Shown here piece by piece: positions 2,082 to 53,681 of a stretch of 64,000 bases of DNA (position 1 is its first letter; each line of letters starts with the position of its first letter). A program made the translations under genes and the position numbers. The stretch covers positions 124,001 to 188,000 of IMG/VR virus record IMGVR_UViG_3300031787_000001. The stretch is one strand, 5' to 3'. The notes beneath the pieces are model-generated. The model saw nothing but the letters and a program-made list of their open reading frames with translations, was not told the origin of the DNA and searched no databases.

Positions 2082-2603
2082 TTATAAATCTAAACCACCT
2101 TTATCTAATTTTTCAAAATTTTCTAAATCCCCAAAGTTTGGGTCTGATTTTATTTTTTCTTGTTTTGATAGTTTCATTTGATCCAATCTATGTGCATTCA
2201 TATGGTTTTTAACAATGTAATAAATAATTTCTGGATCTCCACCTTTTTCAACAATCCAATCAGAATATTTTTTTACTAATTCAGCAGACACATCTTCATG
2301 ACCATATGCAGTTGGAAAACCGGTTTTAGGGTTTATAGAATGAGTTTCATCCTTACCAATGTCATGAAACAATGCGGCTAAAATTATGTTCATGTTATTT
2401 GGGTAATTCTTAATTGCTCTTTTAACTACCATTATAACATGTTTTAACGTATTGCCTTCGGGATGATAATCAGGTCTTTGTGGTACTTTCCACAGACCAA
2501 AAAAACGATTTTTTATGTCGTCAGGTAACGAATAAATCAATTTTTTTGCATCAACATCACTTTTTATTTCTTCAAACTGTGATTCTGTTATTATAATTTT
2601 CAT
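2082..2603 (-). CDS. HD-domain phosphohydrolase resembling the C-terminal domain of multifunctional CCA enzymes
   Basis: VPQRPDYHPEG..KH, AALFHDIGK, GHE motifs. Confidence 0.8.
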   Translation of the reverse strand: MKIIITESQFEEIKSDVDAKKLIYSLPDDIKNRFFGLWKVPQRPDYHPEGNTLKHVIMVVKRAIKNYPNNMNIILAALFHDIGKDETHSINPKTGFPTAYGHEDVSAELVKKYSDWIVEKGGDPEIIYYIVKNHMNAHRLDQMKLSKQEKIKSDPNFGDLENFEKLDKGGLDL

Positions 2604-2611
2604 ACCAATAA

Positions 2612-3790
2612 TTATATTATTTTTTTGAAATTATCTAATTCAATTTTATTTATCATATCACCCACTTCTTTACCCGGTTTTAAATTCATTTTTTTCATAA
2701 CATCATCTCCACTAACGGTTAAATTAAAATTAACAAAGGCATTTAATAACTTTTTATCAATACCCTCTAAATTACCAAAAGTCATTATTTGATCGTCAGA
2801 TAAATTTGTGTTTTTTTGTATTCTTTTTAATTGAATTACATTATCTAATGACATATTTTTTAAATTAATTAAGAAAGTAATGTCCTTTATCTCATCAACA
2901 CTATATTTTAGATTATTCAATTTTTTTCCGATTGTAGATAGATCATTGTTTTTTAATAATCTTGATATAACTAAAATCGGATCTTTAATTTCTATAAAAT
3001 CTTTTGACACAGATAAACCTCTGAATATTGAATCAAATAAATTATACTTATCAATCAATTGTAAAAAATGTATTGTTGATTTAGATGATATAATTCCCTT
3101 TATAAATTCATCTCTAATCCTTTCTCCCGATATACCATCTATACTTGAATTTCTCTGTAATGATTGATCAACATTATTATCTAAATCTGAACCGAACCTA
3201 CCAGCAAATCTAATTGCTCTAAGTATTCTTAATCTATCTTCATTAAATCTATCGTCAGGGTTACCAACAGTTCTAACAATATCGTTTTTTAAATCCTCAA
3301 CACCGCCAACTAAATCAACAACTTCACCTGTGTCAATATCATAATAAAGAGCATTTATTGTGAAATCCCTTCTTTTCGCATCTGTTTCAATATCTGTAAA
3401 TTCAACTTTATCTGGTCTTCTTTTATCTGACTCTGAATAAGATTCAGATCTAAATGTTGCTATTTCATATTCATCGTTATCTGTAAAAACATTTATAACA
3501 CCGAACGCCTTTCCCGTCGGTAATGTTTTGTAACCTGAATTATTTAATATTGTTTCAACCTCATCGGGTGTTGCATCCGTGGTCAAATCATAATCTTTTG
3601 GTGTTTTACCCAATACCGCATCTCTAACCGCACCACCAACAACAAATAATTTATAGTTATTTTTTTTGAAAATATCTTTAATTTTAATAATGTCTTCAGG
3701 TATTGATATATTGAATTTTATTCTTTCTTCAACCAATAAATCTGAATACATTATTTTATTTAATTGTGATTCAGTTATAACAATTTTCAT
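2612..3790 (-). CDS. cca: Class II tRNA nucleotidyltransferase (CCA-adding enzyme)
   Basis: VGGAVRD, DYD, RRDFTINAL, EDRLRILRAIRF (EDxxR). Confidence 0.9.
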   Translation of the reverse strand: MKIVITESQLNKIMYSDLLVEERIKFNISIPEDIIKIKDIFKKNNYKLFVVGGAVRDAVLGKTPKDYDLTTDATPDEVETILNNSGYKTLPTGKAFGVINVFTDNDEYEIATFRSESYSESDKRRPDKVEFTDIETDAKRRDFTINALYYDIDTGEVVDLVGGVEDLKNDIVRTVGNPDDRFNEDRLRILRAIRFAGRFGSDLDNNVDQSLQRNSSIDGISGERIRDEFIKGIISSKSTIHFLQLIDKYNLFDSIFRGLSVSKDFIEIKDPILVISRLLKNNDLSTIGKKLNNLKYSVDEIKDITFLINLKNMSLDNVIQLKRIQKNTNLSDDQIMTFGNLEGIDKKLLNAFVNFNLTVSGDDVMKKMNLKPGKEVGDMINKIELDNFKKII

Positions 3791-53421: not shown

Positions 53422-53537
53422 ATCAATATTTTCAACAAATATAAGAGAAATAATTTTAAAACAAAAAAAATATTTATTAAAGGTCCGATATCCGCGTTTT
53501 CATCTCACTCGGACCAACATGAGCTTCCGACGGGTTG

Positions 53538-53681
53538 TGGTCAGGACAGGATTCGAACCTGTTTTGTAATAAAGGGTCTCACGACAGTTATTTCTAACCT
53601 ACATTTCTGTAGCGTGGTTTGAGTAGTCCCTAAACTGTTCTCTTTTATATTACAATGGCGTACCAATTCCGCCACCTGACT
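53538..53681 (-). ncRNA. tRNA-like RNA with ~90-nt structured insert in place of the anticodon/variable arms
   Basis: 5' AGTCAGGTGGCGGAATTGGTACGC; 3' ACAGGTTCGAATCCTGT-CCTGACCA; acceptor and T stems pair. Confidence 0.75.

Follow-up and report, generated by a model that had tools for sequence, protein, structure and literature searches.

What kind of RNA has the two ends of a transfer RNA (tRNA) and, between them, something other than an anticodon arm? This question is raised by a 144-nt locus on the minus strand of a 64,000-nt stretch of DNA (hereafter the window), which comprises bases 124001-188000 of a 286,785-bp IMG/VR virus record (~30% G+C; CheckV completeness 86%). The source is a jumbo phage of lake water. 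A first-pass annotation, made from the letters of the window, had described the locus as a tRNA mimic with a long structured insert and had offered two readings of it, a tRNA-scaffolded non-coding RNA or a nuclease decoy. Here we report that the RNA belongs to a large family of phage RNAs, in which one frame of leucine type, referred to below as the chassis, is combined with many different middles, referred to as modules. With confidence that is evenly balanced, we propose that these are non-decoding RNAs on a tRNA-Leu-derived chassis, which delivers and stabilises interchangeable modules, the module being the acting part.

Anatomy of the window RNA

The tRNA-like RNA predicted on the minus strand is real, and its parts are collected with their coordinates in Table 1. 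The acceptor stem, the D arm with G18G19 and the T loop with U54-U55-C56 of a canonical tRNA are all present, the only irregularity in this part being one A.C opposition at positions 1-72. The canonical T arm and the acceptor stem of six base pairs (GTCAGG/CCTGAC) behind an A1.C72 mismatch, both of which had been annotated, are borne out by the sequence; the 3-70 pair is U-A, and U8 stands between the 5′ strand of the acceptor stem and the D stem. The 5′ region, described at first as of Leu/Ser type, can be assigned to the Leu type, with positions 8-21 matching those of the phage's own tRNA-Leu and differing from those of its Ser and Tyr tRNAs. The letters AAAAT precede A1, and no CCA follows the discriminator, as had been noticed; A73 is followed by CAA instead.

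What is absent is the 5-bp anticodon stem with the 7-nt loop of a decoding tRNA. An insert of ~92 nt with an 8-bp closing helix takes the place of the anticodon and variable arms. RF00005, the tRNA family of Rfam, aligns with the RNA from end to end with an 85-nt insertion at the anticodon arm, giving 26.5 bits (cut-off 29) and an E-value of 0.0027 in a 601-nt stretch. The check with ARAGORN that had been suggested, together with Rfam scans, gave a divided answer: default ARAGORN found no tRNA and Rfam at its gathering score no family in the 64-kb window, whereas the relaxed search recovered the end-to-end tRNA alignment.

The full 144-nt RNA folds moderately better than its shuffles (z -2.4). 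Three nested stems had been proposed within the insert, and the repeats are all present. The outer helix, and inside it a CTACA-GAAA-TGTAG hairpin, appear in both the minimum free energy (MFE) and the centroid folds. The third stem, ACAGTT/AACTGT, does not stand, as it is missing from both folds and carries two uncompensated changes in the only known variant of the module, which is described below. A GTG-initiated open frame of 44 codons (window 53541-53675, minus strand) spans the entire tRNA-like RNA; we take it to be fortuitous, though gene-calling programs might list it among hypothetical proteins.

A family of tRNA-like units in uncultured phages

Is the RNA peculiar to this phage? IMG/VR was searched with the exact 5′ 16-mer and the exact 3′ 20-mer of the RNA, each of which returned at least 120 stretches, and a unit, defined as the 5′ motif followed by the 3′ motif, was extracted wherever it occurred in the fetched loci. 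The family statistics given here are biased in that retrieval was by motif and only among the matches listed. The family termini are found in at least 179 IMG/VR loci, with at least 194 distinct units of 70-273 nt (median 107), so that the search for members with variable inserts that had been proposed was amply rewarded. The consensus of a unit is an A/T-rich leader ending in AT, then AGTCAGGTGGCGGAAT(T)GGTAGACGC, a variable stretch, TACAGGTTCGAATCCTGTCCTGACTA and finally CAAA. The window RNA carries the termini AGTCAGGTGGCGGAAT at its 5′ end (16/16 identical) and GGTTCGAATCCTGTCCTGAC at its 3′ end (20/20), followed by N72 and A73, with C at N72 where U is the usual base.

A covariance model of the family, R1, was built from 60 units with the window unit left out. 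It matched the window RNA with 59.8 bits (E 7.5e-11), the sole match in the 64-kb window, and a paralogue elsewhere in the same phage with 48.8 bits, while genuine tRNAs reached at most 35 bits. Twenty large contigs (92-271 kb; seven of them at least 90% complete) contain 1-9 units each, clustered or dispersed, and at one locus nine units lie among genuine tRNAs inside 3.5 kb. In contigs from four lake metagenomes, the summed depth at the two conserved ends is ~5-280 times that of the middle, depending on run and end, and many of these contigs connect both conserved ends via different middle letters.

No family member occurs among 50,697 GenBank phage records. In bacterial genomes (GTDB), real units are found, among the matches listed, on only three contigs, one binned as Sediminibacterium (L220), one as Flavobacterium (L248) and a further one (L322); the other listed bacterial 15-mer matches are seemingly ordinary, mostly coding, sequence and are put down to chance. 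A neighbouring 326-aa protein used as a query for close phage relatives, in view of synteny, returned identical copies only.

The family also escapes the usual catalogues. Default ARAGORN takes at least 39 members for tRNAs of various kinds (Leu, Ser, Tyr, Ile, Pro, Cys and others) or gives their type as undetermined, and virome tRNA counts are likely inflated or mislabelled by the Leu-chassis family. The characteristic sequences occur in no searchable paper, and full-text searches returned no description of the family. A 2023 catalogue of ~8,500 candidate structured RNAs from IMG/VR has, in its accessible part, five tRNA-overlapping motifs, all of other isotypes, and its supplementary tables might hold an earlier listing of some subclass. 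This large family in uncultured phages was apparently undescribed before.

A leucine-type chassis under RNA-level constraint

The chassis is under constraint at the level of RNA. Among 190 units, sequence identity at the acceptor pairs is 92-99%; the 1-72 pair is A1-U72 in 175 and A.C, as in the window copy, in 5, and A73 is present in 171. U54, U55, C56, R57 and A58 of the T loop are kept in all 190, and within the T stem 25 changes lead to G-U pairs and 17 are double and compensatory, breaks being very rare. An alignment of 60 units shows U8 and A15 to be invariant and A14 and G18 to be conserved in at least 90%.

As to the origin of the chassis, the 26 nt at the 5′ end of the units were set against the ordinary tRNAs encoded at these phage loci, and tRNA-Leu was nearest, with a mean score of 8 against at most 3.3 for the other isotypes. 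One locus of the family (L102) holds a genuine phage tRNA-Leu(UAA) with the acceptor stem ACTCAGG/CCTGAGT, which suggests that the likely ancestry of the chassis lies in tRNA-Leu.

The gene context of the units is likewise that of tRNAs. Ordinary tRNA genes number 23 in the window's phage and lie on the plus strand at 81.7-89.0 kb of its genome. In 21 of the 23 the trailer reads N73-C-A with no CCA encoded, and most leaders are A/T-rich and end in T; across the family, 186 of 194 units have a trailer that begins with C. Since the genuine tRNAs share this signature of trailer and leader, and since units sit among tRNAs, the units are probably cut out and CCA-tailed, and thus matured, like tRNAs. 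The earlier suggestion that the RNA may need a CCA enzyme is a reasonable one: the genuine tRNAs of the phage lack CCA as well, and a nucleotidyltransferase is encoded within the window (Table 1).

Many different modules in place of the anticodon arm

The middles of the units form many discrete classes that recur across phage contexts, much as tRNA species do. This follows from 59 pairs of units whose middles share 60-100% identity and in most of which both 150-nt flanks are at the random level. In the best-sampled class (n=7), RNAalifold predicts a cloverleaf-like fold in which 9 of the 28 predicted pairs covary; an 8-bp helix at the position of the anticodon stem shows five double compensatory changes and an inner hairpin one, and the T and D stems are also compensated.

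The members of the family are non-decoding RNAs with no consistent anticodon. The shortest of them, of 70 nt, have a 5-bp stem with a tetraloop in the place of the 7-nt anticodon loop. ARAGORN assigns to members of one and the same acceptor identity more than 12 different anticodons, which are mutually inconsistent.

Do the modules resemble anything known, or one another? Rfam scans of the locus at E-values up to 10 and of ten family loci at E-values up to 0.1 gave sub-threshold or weak tRNA matches only, and in the scans of the window, the locus and the ten family loci there was no match to a ribozyme, riboswitch or intron. No enriched k-mer is shared across modules, and in a search for antisense matches of the phage's two modules to its own genome, the best were no better than those of shuffles. 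The modules are structurally heterogeneous. A general architecture of closed rods was considered and rejected on the frequency of predicted closing helices, which is given below among the points against our explanation.

The module of the window RNA recurs in a 125-kb phage contig (L330, L332, L335), where its unit is one of two in an array; the flanks there are unrelated, and A1 pairs perfectly with U72. This version (L330/L332) differs from that of the window by A39U, U48A, A55C and U96A and by an insertion of GACCA after position 67. The outer 8-bp helix and the CUACA/UGUAG hairpin are identical in both, and covariation neither supports nor contradicts them. Three further viral scans and one metagenome scan gave the same two versions. 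The fold of the window module, for which just these two variants exist, can be drawn only tentatively, as the outer helix with the CUACA/UGUAG hairpin inside it.

The paralogue in the phage's own tRNA region has the same acceptor stem with a perfect A1-U72 pair, the same positions 8-16 and a near-identical T arm with one G-U change in the T stem. Its D loop holds a 93-nt hairpin, AGAATGTAA...TTACATTCT, and it has a variable hairpin of class-II type and no recognisable anticodon loop. In at least five further units the D loop, too, holds an additional insert, placed between positions 15/16 and G18. The frame thus has two insertion ports, the anticodon region and position 16/17 of the D loop. 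Additions at both the anticodon region and the D loop are tolerated by the L-shaped tRNA.

In about 12 loci (L330:1297-1325, L332:7865-7893, L087:13738, L141, L115, L026, L056, L103 and others), the first unit is immediately preceded on its 5′ side by a conserved leader, TGAC(A/G)GCT(T/C)GGAAAGAC(A/G)AGCAA(A/C)AT, which folds into a small hairpin that has a GAAAGA loop and shows T/C-A/G covariation. The same leader is also found ahead of non-family sequences in L144 and L167 and is absent from the window's phage; its role could be that of a phage promoter or of an element for processing.

Neighbouring genes and flanking elements

Which genes of the phage could act on such RNAs? The 392-aa nucleotidyltransferase has a PolyA_pol head and an RNA-binding domain, its HD domain being split off in the adjoining open reading frame (ORF; together window 2082-3790). 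The two domains are fused in the E. coli CCA-adding enzyme. Judged by its domains, the phage protein is a candidate for adding CCA to the CCA-less tRNAs and tRNA-like RNAs of this phage. As a general partner of the family it was rejected, since only one of 20 other large contigs with units encodes such a nucleotidyltransferase, so that a host enzyme must usually serve. A gene with the HAD_SAK_2 domain lies 1.5 kb from the tRNA-like gene, with small ORFs lacking family matches nearby, and an RNA ligase of T4 Rnl1 type is encoded ~3.5 kb upstream of the tRNA cluster. Taken together, the ligase, the nucleotidyltransferase with its HD protein and the HAD_SAK_2 protein form a tRNA-repair toolkit, which indicates that tRNAs are contested in this system. 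Ro60/TROVE, RtcB, leucyl-tRNA synthetase (LeuRS) and leucyl/phenylalanyl-tRNA-protein transferase (L/F-transferase) are not encoded in this phage, TROVE having been sought across the 287-kb record. Across the 179 fetched loci the top ORF clusters are terminase, DUF932, GIY-YIG and similar, and in 10-13 loci genes for GIY-YIG (SegE-like) and T5orf172 endonucleases are found close to units.

A third odd tRNA-like sequence was noticed in the tRNA cluster (G000:C1:86303-86403 of the phage genome, plus strand). Its T arm reads TCAGG-TTCAATT-CCTGA, and a GGTCCC/GGGACC stem surrounds ~32 nt; ARAGORN run for introns (-i) makes of it a tRNA-Leu(CAG) whose intron is 25 nt long, and RF00005 does not detect it. 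It was rejected as a member of the Leu-chassis family, there being no R1 match to it in L003.

Table 1. Features of the tRNA-like locus and of related genes; positions are those of the window unless the phage genome (G000) is named
Feature	Position	Strand	Basis or remark
tRNA-like RNA gene, 144 nt	53538..53681	-	A1 = 53681, discriminator A73 = 53538; matches to RF00005 and to the family model, exact family termini
Acceptor stem, 5′ strand AGTCAGG	53675..53681	-	partner 53539-53545
D arm: GCG/CGC stem plus one extra G-C pair, loop GAATTGGTA with A14 and G18G19, Leu-type	53657..53673	-	sequence
Inserted module, RNA positions 27-118 (92 nt)	53564..53655	-	MFE and centroid folds; homologous module in another phage
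Outer 8-bp helix TTGTAATA/TATTACAA closing the module	53648-53655 with 53564-53571	-	MFE and centroid folds
T arm ACAGG-TTCGAAT-CCTGT	53546..53562	-	sequence and RF00005 alignment
Acceptor stem, 3′ strand CCTGACC	53539..53545	-	sequence, family comparison
3′ trailer CAA right after A73, CCA not encoded	53535..53537	-	sequence
Inverted repeat GGTCCGA...TCGGACC (7 bp, 20-nt loop), then A/T-rich tract ending in T8	53482..53515	-	sequence
Paralogue of the window RNA within the tRNA region	G000:C1:84285-84487 = L002:1323-1525	+	R1 48.8 bits
Class-II nucleotidyltransferase, 392 aa, CCA-adding/poly(A) polymerase family	2612..3790	-	PF01743 138.5 bits, and PF12627
HD-domain protein, 173 aa, ORF next to the nucleotidyltransferase	2082-2603	-	
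HAD_SAK_2 protein, 173 aa	55179-55700	-	PF18143 (‘Swiss Army Knife’ RNA-repair HAD domain), 71 bits
RNA ligase of T4 Rnl1 type, 360-aa frame	G000:C1:77634-78200	+	PF09511 76.5 bits

The GGTCCGA/TCGGACC hairpin that had been pointed out just 3′ of the RNA exists as a repeat (arms 53515-53509 and 53488-53482), and there its significance ends. The region folds no better than shuffles (z +0.93), the terminator scan did not call it, and it is missing beside the homologous unit of the other phage (L330/L332). It may be a weak terminator of a solitary gene, and its membership in the element is doubtful. In the same region, TCGGA of the trailer (53530-53526) can also pair with TCCGA of GGTCCGA (53513-53509; window 53509-53530, minus strand). 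The middle segment of the trailer thus has two possible partners, one upstream and the other the downstream TCGGACC, which resembles a pair of alternative hairpins but may be due to chance. The only sigma-70-like promoter match was rejected as implausible, ending as it does directly at A1.

How the RNA may work, and what speaks against it

Of the two readings offered at the outset, a tRNA-scaffolded non-coding RNA fits best: the frame is constrained, the modules are conserved and are not anticodon arms, and the flanks are like those of phage tRNA genes. From this we infer transcription, processing, CCA addition and an activity of the module, which may be pictured as follows. As the chassis would render the transcript a substrate for tRNA maturation, RNase P would cut at A1, the 3′ end would be trimmed after A73 by tRNA-processing enzymes, and CCA would be added by the host enzyme or, in this phage, by its own nucleotidyltransferase. 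The chassis would then fold into the L-shaped elbow, giving a stable RNA with precise ends, and the module would project at the site of the anticodon arm and be the part that acts, its most likely task being to bind a factor of the host or of the phage. Both halves of this picture have precedents. The tRNA-like domain of the Y RNA YrlA of M. smegmatis is cleaved by RNase P and receives CCA (PMC4201824), so a tRNA-like module in a bacterial non-coding RNA can be a substrate of both RNase P and CCA addition. In engineered tRNA scaffolds, RNAs inserted at the anticodon position are stabilised in E. coli (PMC3753655).

Several observations weigh against this explanation. The window copy departs from the family norm by its A1.C72 mismatch, the missing U48 and a shortened D loop; it is solitary, lying 93 kb from the phage tRNA cluster, and there is no convincing promoter or terminator at it. 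No companion protein gene was found within ~7 kb of the units, the best ORF cluster, a terminase, being present in 24 of 179 loci. The modules fold with a median z-score of only -0.63, pseudoknots left aside, many of them being not obviously compact domains, and a closing helix of at least 4 bp is predicted in just 14% of modules against 10% of shuffles. Then there is the chassis itself. Were processing and stability its only tasks, compensatory changes should let its helices drift; yet the sequence of the acceptor stem, and not only its pairing, is almost fixed. This points to a sequence-specific reader, for which LeuRS and a titrated host factor are candidates and which lies outside the explanation that we favour. 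Part of the invariance stems from the way in which the units were fished, with near-exact end motifs.

Alternative explanations

If the chassis is read by something, could the chassis be the acting part? The RNA would then be an uncleavable decoy or sponge for tRNA-Leu, titrating a host factor that reads the upper half of tRNA(Leu) or tRNA 3′ ends, such as an anti-phage tRNA nuclease, a toxin that modifies the acceptor end or LeuRS itself, while the loss of the anticodon loop would keep the RNA from translation and from anticodon nucleases. The near-invariant sequence of acceptor, D and T regions, which suggests sequence-specific recognition, the several copies per genome and the repair toolkit of Rnl1-type ligase, nucleotidyltransferase with HD protein and HAD_SAK_2, which indicates conflict over tRNAs, all argue for such a decoy. 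We nevertheless consider it rather unlikely, as a decoy has no need for dozens of module classes conserved in unrelated contexts with covariation, and conserved discrete classes speak against a middle that is mere filler; no target came to light in this analysis, and we know of no defence specific to tRNA-Leu. Still more doubtful is a leucylated adaptor, in which the host LeuRS, blind to the anticodon, would charge all members, and the modules would steer the leucyl or CCA end elsewhere, for instance to stalled ribosomes in the manner of transfer-messenger RNA (tmRNA) or to aminoacyl-transfer enzymes. The determinants of bacterial LeuRS are A73 and the core contacts U8-A14, G18-U55 and G19-C56, with a dispensable anticodon arm (PMC2377443), and they coincide with the conserved positions of the family; the D arm is of Leu type, and one acceptor identity on many lower halves has the logic of an adaptor set. 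The same study also requires an orientation of the variable arm, however, which is not conserved in the family; the window copy has the A1.C72 mismatch and no U48, the phage has no LeuRS or L/F-transferase gene, there is neither a tmRNA-like tag frame nor G3-U70, the ARAGORN tmRNA search was negative, and the idea is purely inferential. Equally doubtful is the broader notion of a second phage-encoded adaptor set, in which all members would share one acceptor identity, of Leu type and charged by the host LeuRS despite the missing anticodon or else read by one common factor, and each conserved module class would direct the charged or CCA end, or the bound factor, to a target of its own; if true, the adaptor set would be a modular library of RNA effectors in the conflict of phage and host instead of a collection of stabilised aptamers.

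The remaining alternatives take the locus for something other than a functional non-coding RNA. One places the function in the DNA: homing endonucleases would target the ends, or the ends would be hot spots of recombination within tRNA clusters, and the middles would be shuffled passengers devoid of RNA function. The GIY-YIG (SegE-like) and T5orf172 genes near units would suit this, as would the recurrence of whole units in unrelated flanks like a mobile cassette. It is very unlikely all the same, given that changes in the chassis keep RNA pairing (G-U or compensatory) and tertiary-contact nucleotides, that module helices covary and that all units are oriented with tRNA-like leaders and trailers. 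An intron-interrupted functional tRNA is more improbable again. ARAGORN -i does call a tRNA-Phe(AAA) with a 71-nt intron, and the insert does sit in the anticodon region; the proposed site, though, is 40/41 and not 37/38, and AAA, with its A34, makes an implausible anticodon. At the locus, neither group I nor any other intron family matched at E-values up to 10, and 71-95 nt is too short for group I, as had been said of the insert from the start. The 70-nt members have tetraloops and no space for an anticodon arm, the predicted anticodons vary widely among members of one acceptor identity, and the phage already carries a tRNA-Phe(GAA). Hardly credible, finally, is a decayed, non-functional pseudo-tRNA specific to this phage. 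A score below the Rfam tRNA cut-off, the A1.C72 mismatch and the solitary position might give that impression, but the family counts hundreds of members, conserved both in their ends and in their module classes, another phage has retained the same module, and the family model gives 59.8 bits. The unique decayed pseudo-tRNA, which the first-pass annotation had named as its own possible undoing, is ruled out by the size of the family.

Comparison with known tRNA-like RNAs

What, then, are the closest known counterparts of these non-decoding, module-bearing RNAs? Among phages, they are the species 1 and 2 RNAs of T4 (rnaC and rnaD), which likewise are phage RNAs of 119-139 nt encoded beside tRNA genes and annotated as small stable RNAs. 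The 139-nt rnaC likewise has a canonical T arm, an acceptor-like 3′ strand and a long non-anticodon middle. It differs in lacking the Leu-type D arm and any sequence relationship with the family, its R1 score of 19.7 bits (E 0.05) being below that of genuine tRNAs, and for rnaC and rnaD no multi-class family with swapped middles is known. By sequence comparison, T4 species 1 RNA is the nearest analogue and not a relative. To our knowledge, the function of the species 1 and 2 RNAs is still unknown.

In YrlA (RF02553), too, a tRNA-like module of acceptor, T and D parts is joined to a second functional module through the position of the anticodon stem, and this tRNA-like part is modified by tRNA enzymes. 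YrlA is encoded beside Ro60/Rsr and binds it, whereas the phage record has no TROVE gene and the locus no RF02553 match. Most YrlA RNAs end in the Ro-binding stem and have their acceptor-like stem capped by a loop. Unlike them, the Leu-chassis RNAs have the normal topology of a tRNA. In tmRNA, a tRNA-like acceptor and T domain with a long helix for the anticodon arm is likewise part of a structured, in that case pseudoknotted, RNA, and charging is independent of any anticodon. The differences are the G3-U70 pair of tmRNA against U3-A70 here, the much shorter length of the window RNA, its full Leu-type D arm and the lack of a consistent tag frame; the ARAGORN search for tmRNA was negative both at the locus and in the window. 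The TMERs of murine gammaherpesvirus 68 are an array of tRNA-like units, not aminoacylated, which are coupled to different small-RNA hairpins and in which the tRNA part provides expression and processing. They differ in belonging to a eukaryotic virus, in their transcription by polymerase III and in the placement of the hairpins, which lie downstream of the tRNA-like unit and not inside it, and there is no homology. In architecture the engineered tRNA scaffolds of E. coli are the same, with a structured RNA replacing the anticodon loop (PMC3753655). Those are a laboratory design, while the Leu-chassis family is natural, combines a fixed Leu-type frame with numerous conserved inserts and can also take up an insert at the D-loop port.

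We therefore rate the family as one that belongs with the tRNA mimics of phages and bacteria, as a variant new among them. Phage tRNA-like stable RNAs have long been known from T4 species 1 and 2, which have no known function and seemed to be curiosities of single phages. The Leu-chassis family is abundant in freshwater viromes, where standard tRNA finders and Rfam miss or mislabel its members. As a natural counterpart to the engineered scaffold it offers a tractable comparative set, many modules on one chassis, and could help to explain what phage tRNA mimicry is for, be it stability and processing, the sequestration of tRNA-binding factors of the host or aminoacylation independent of the anticodon.

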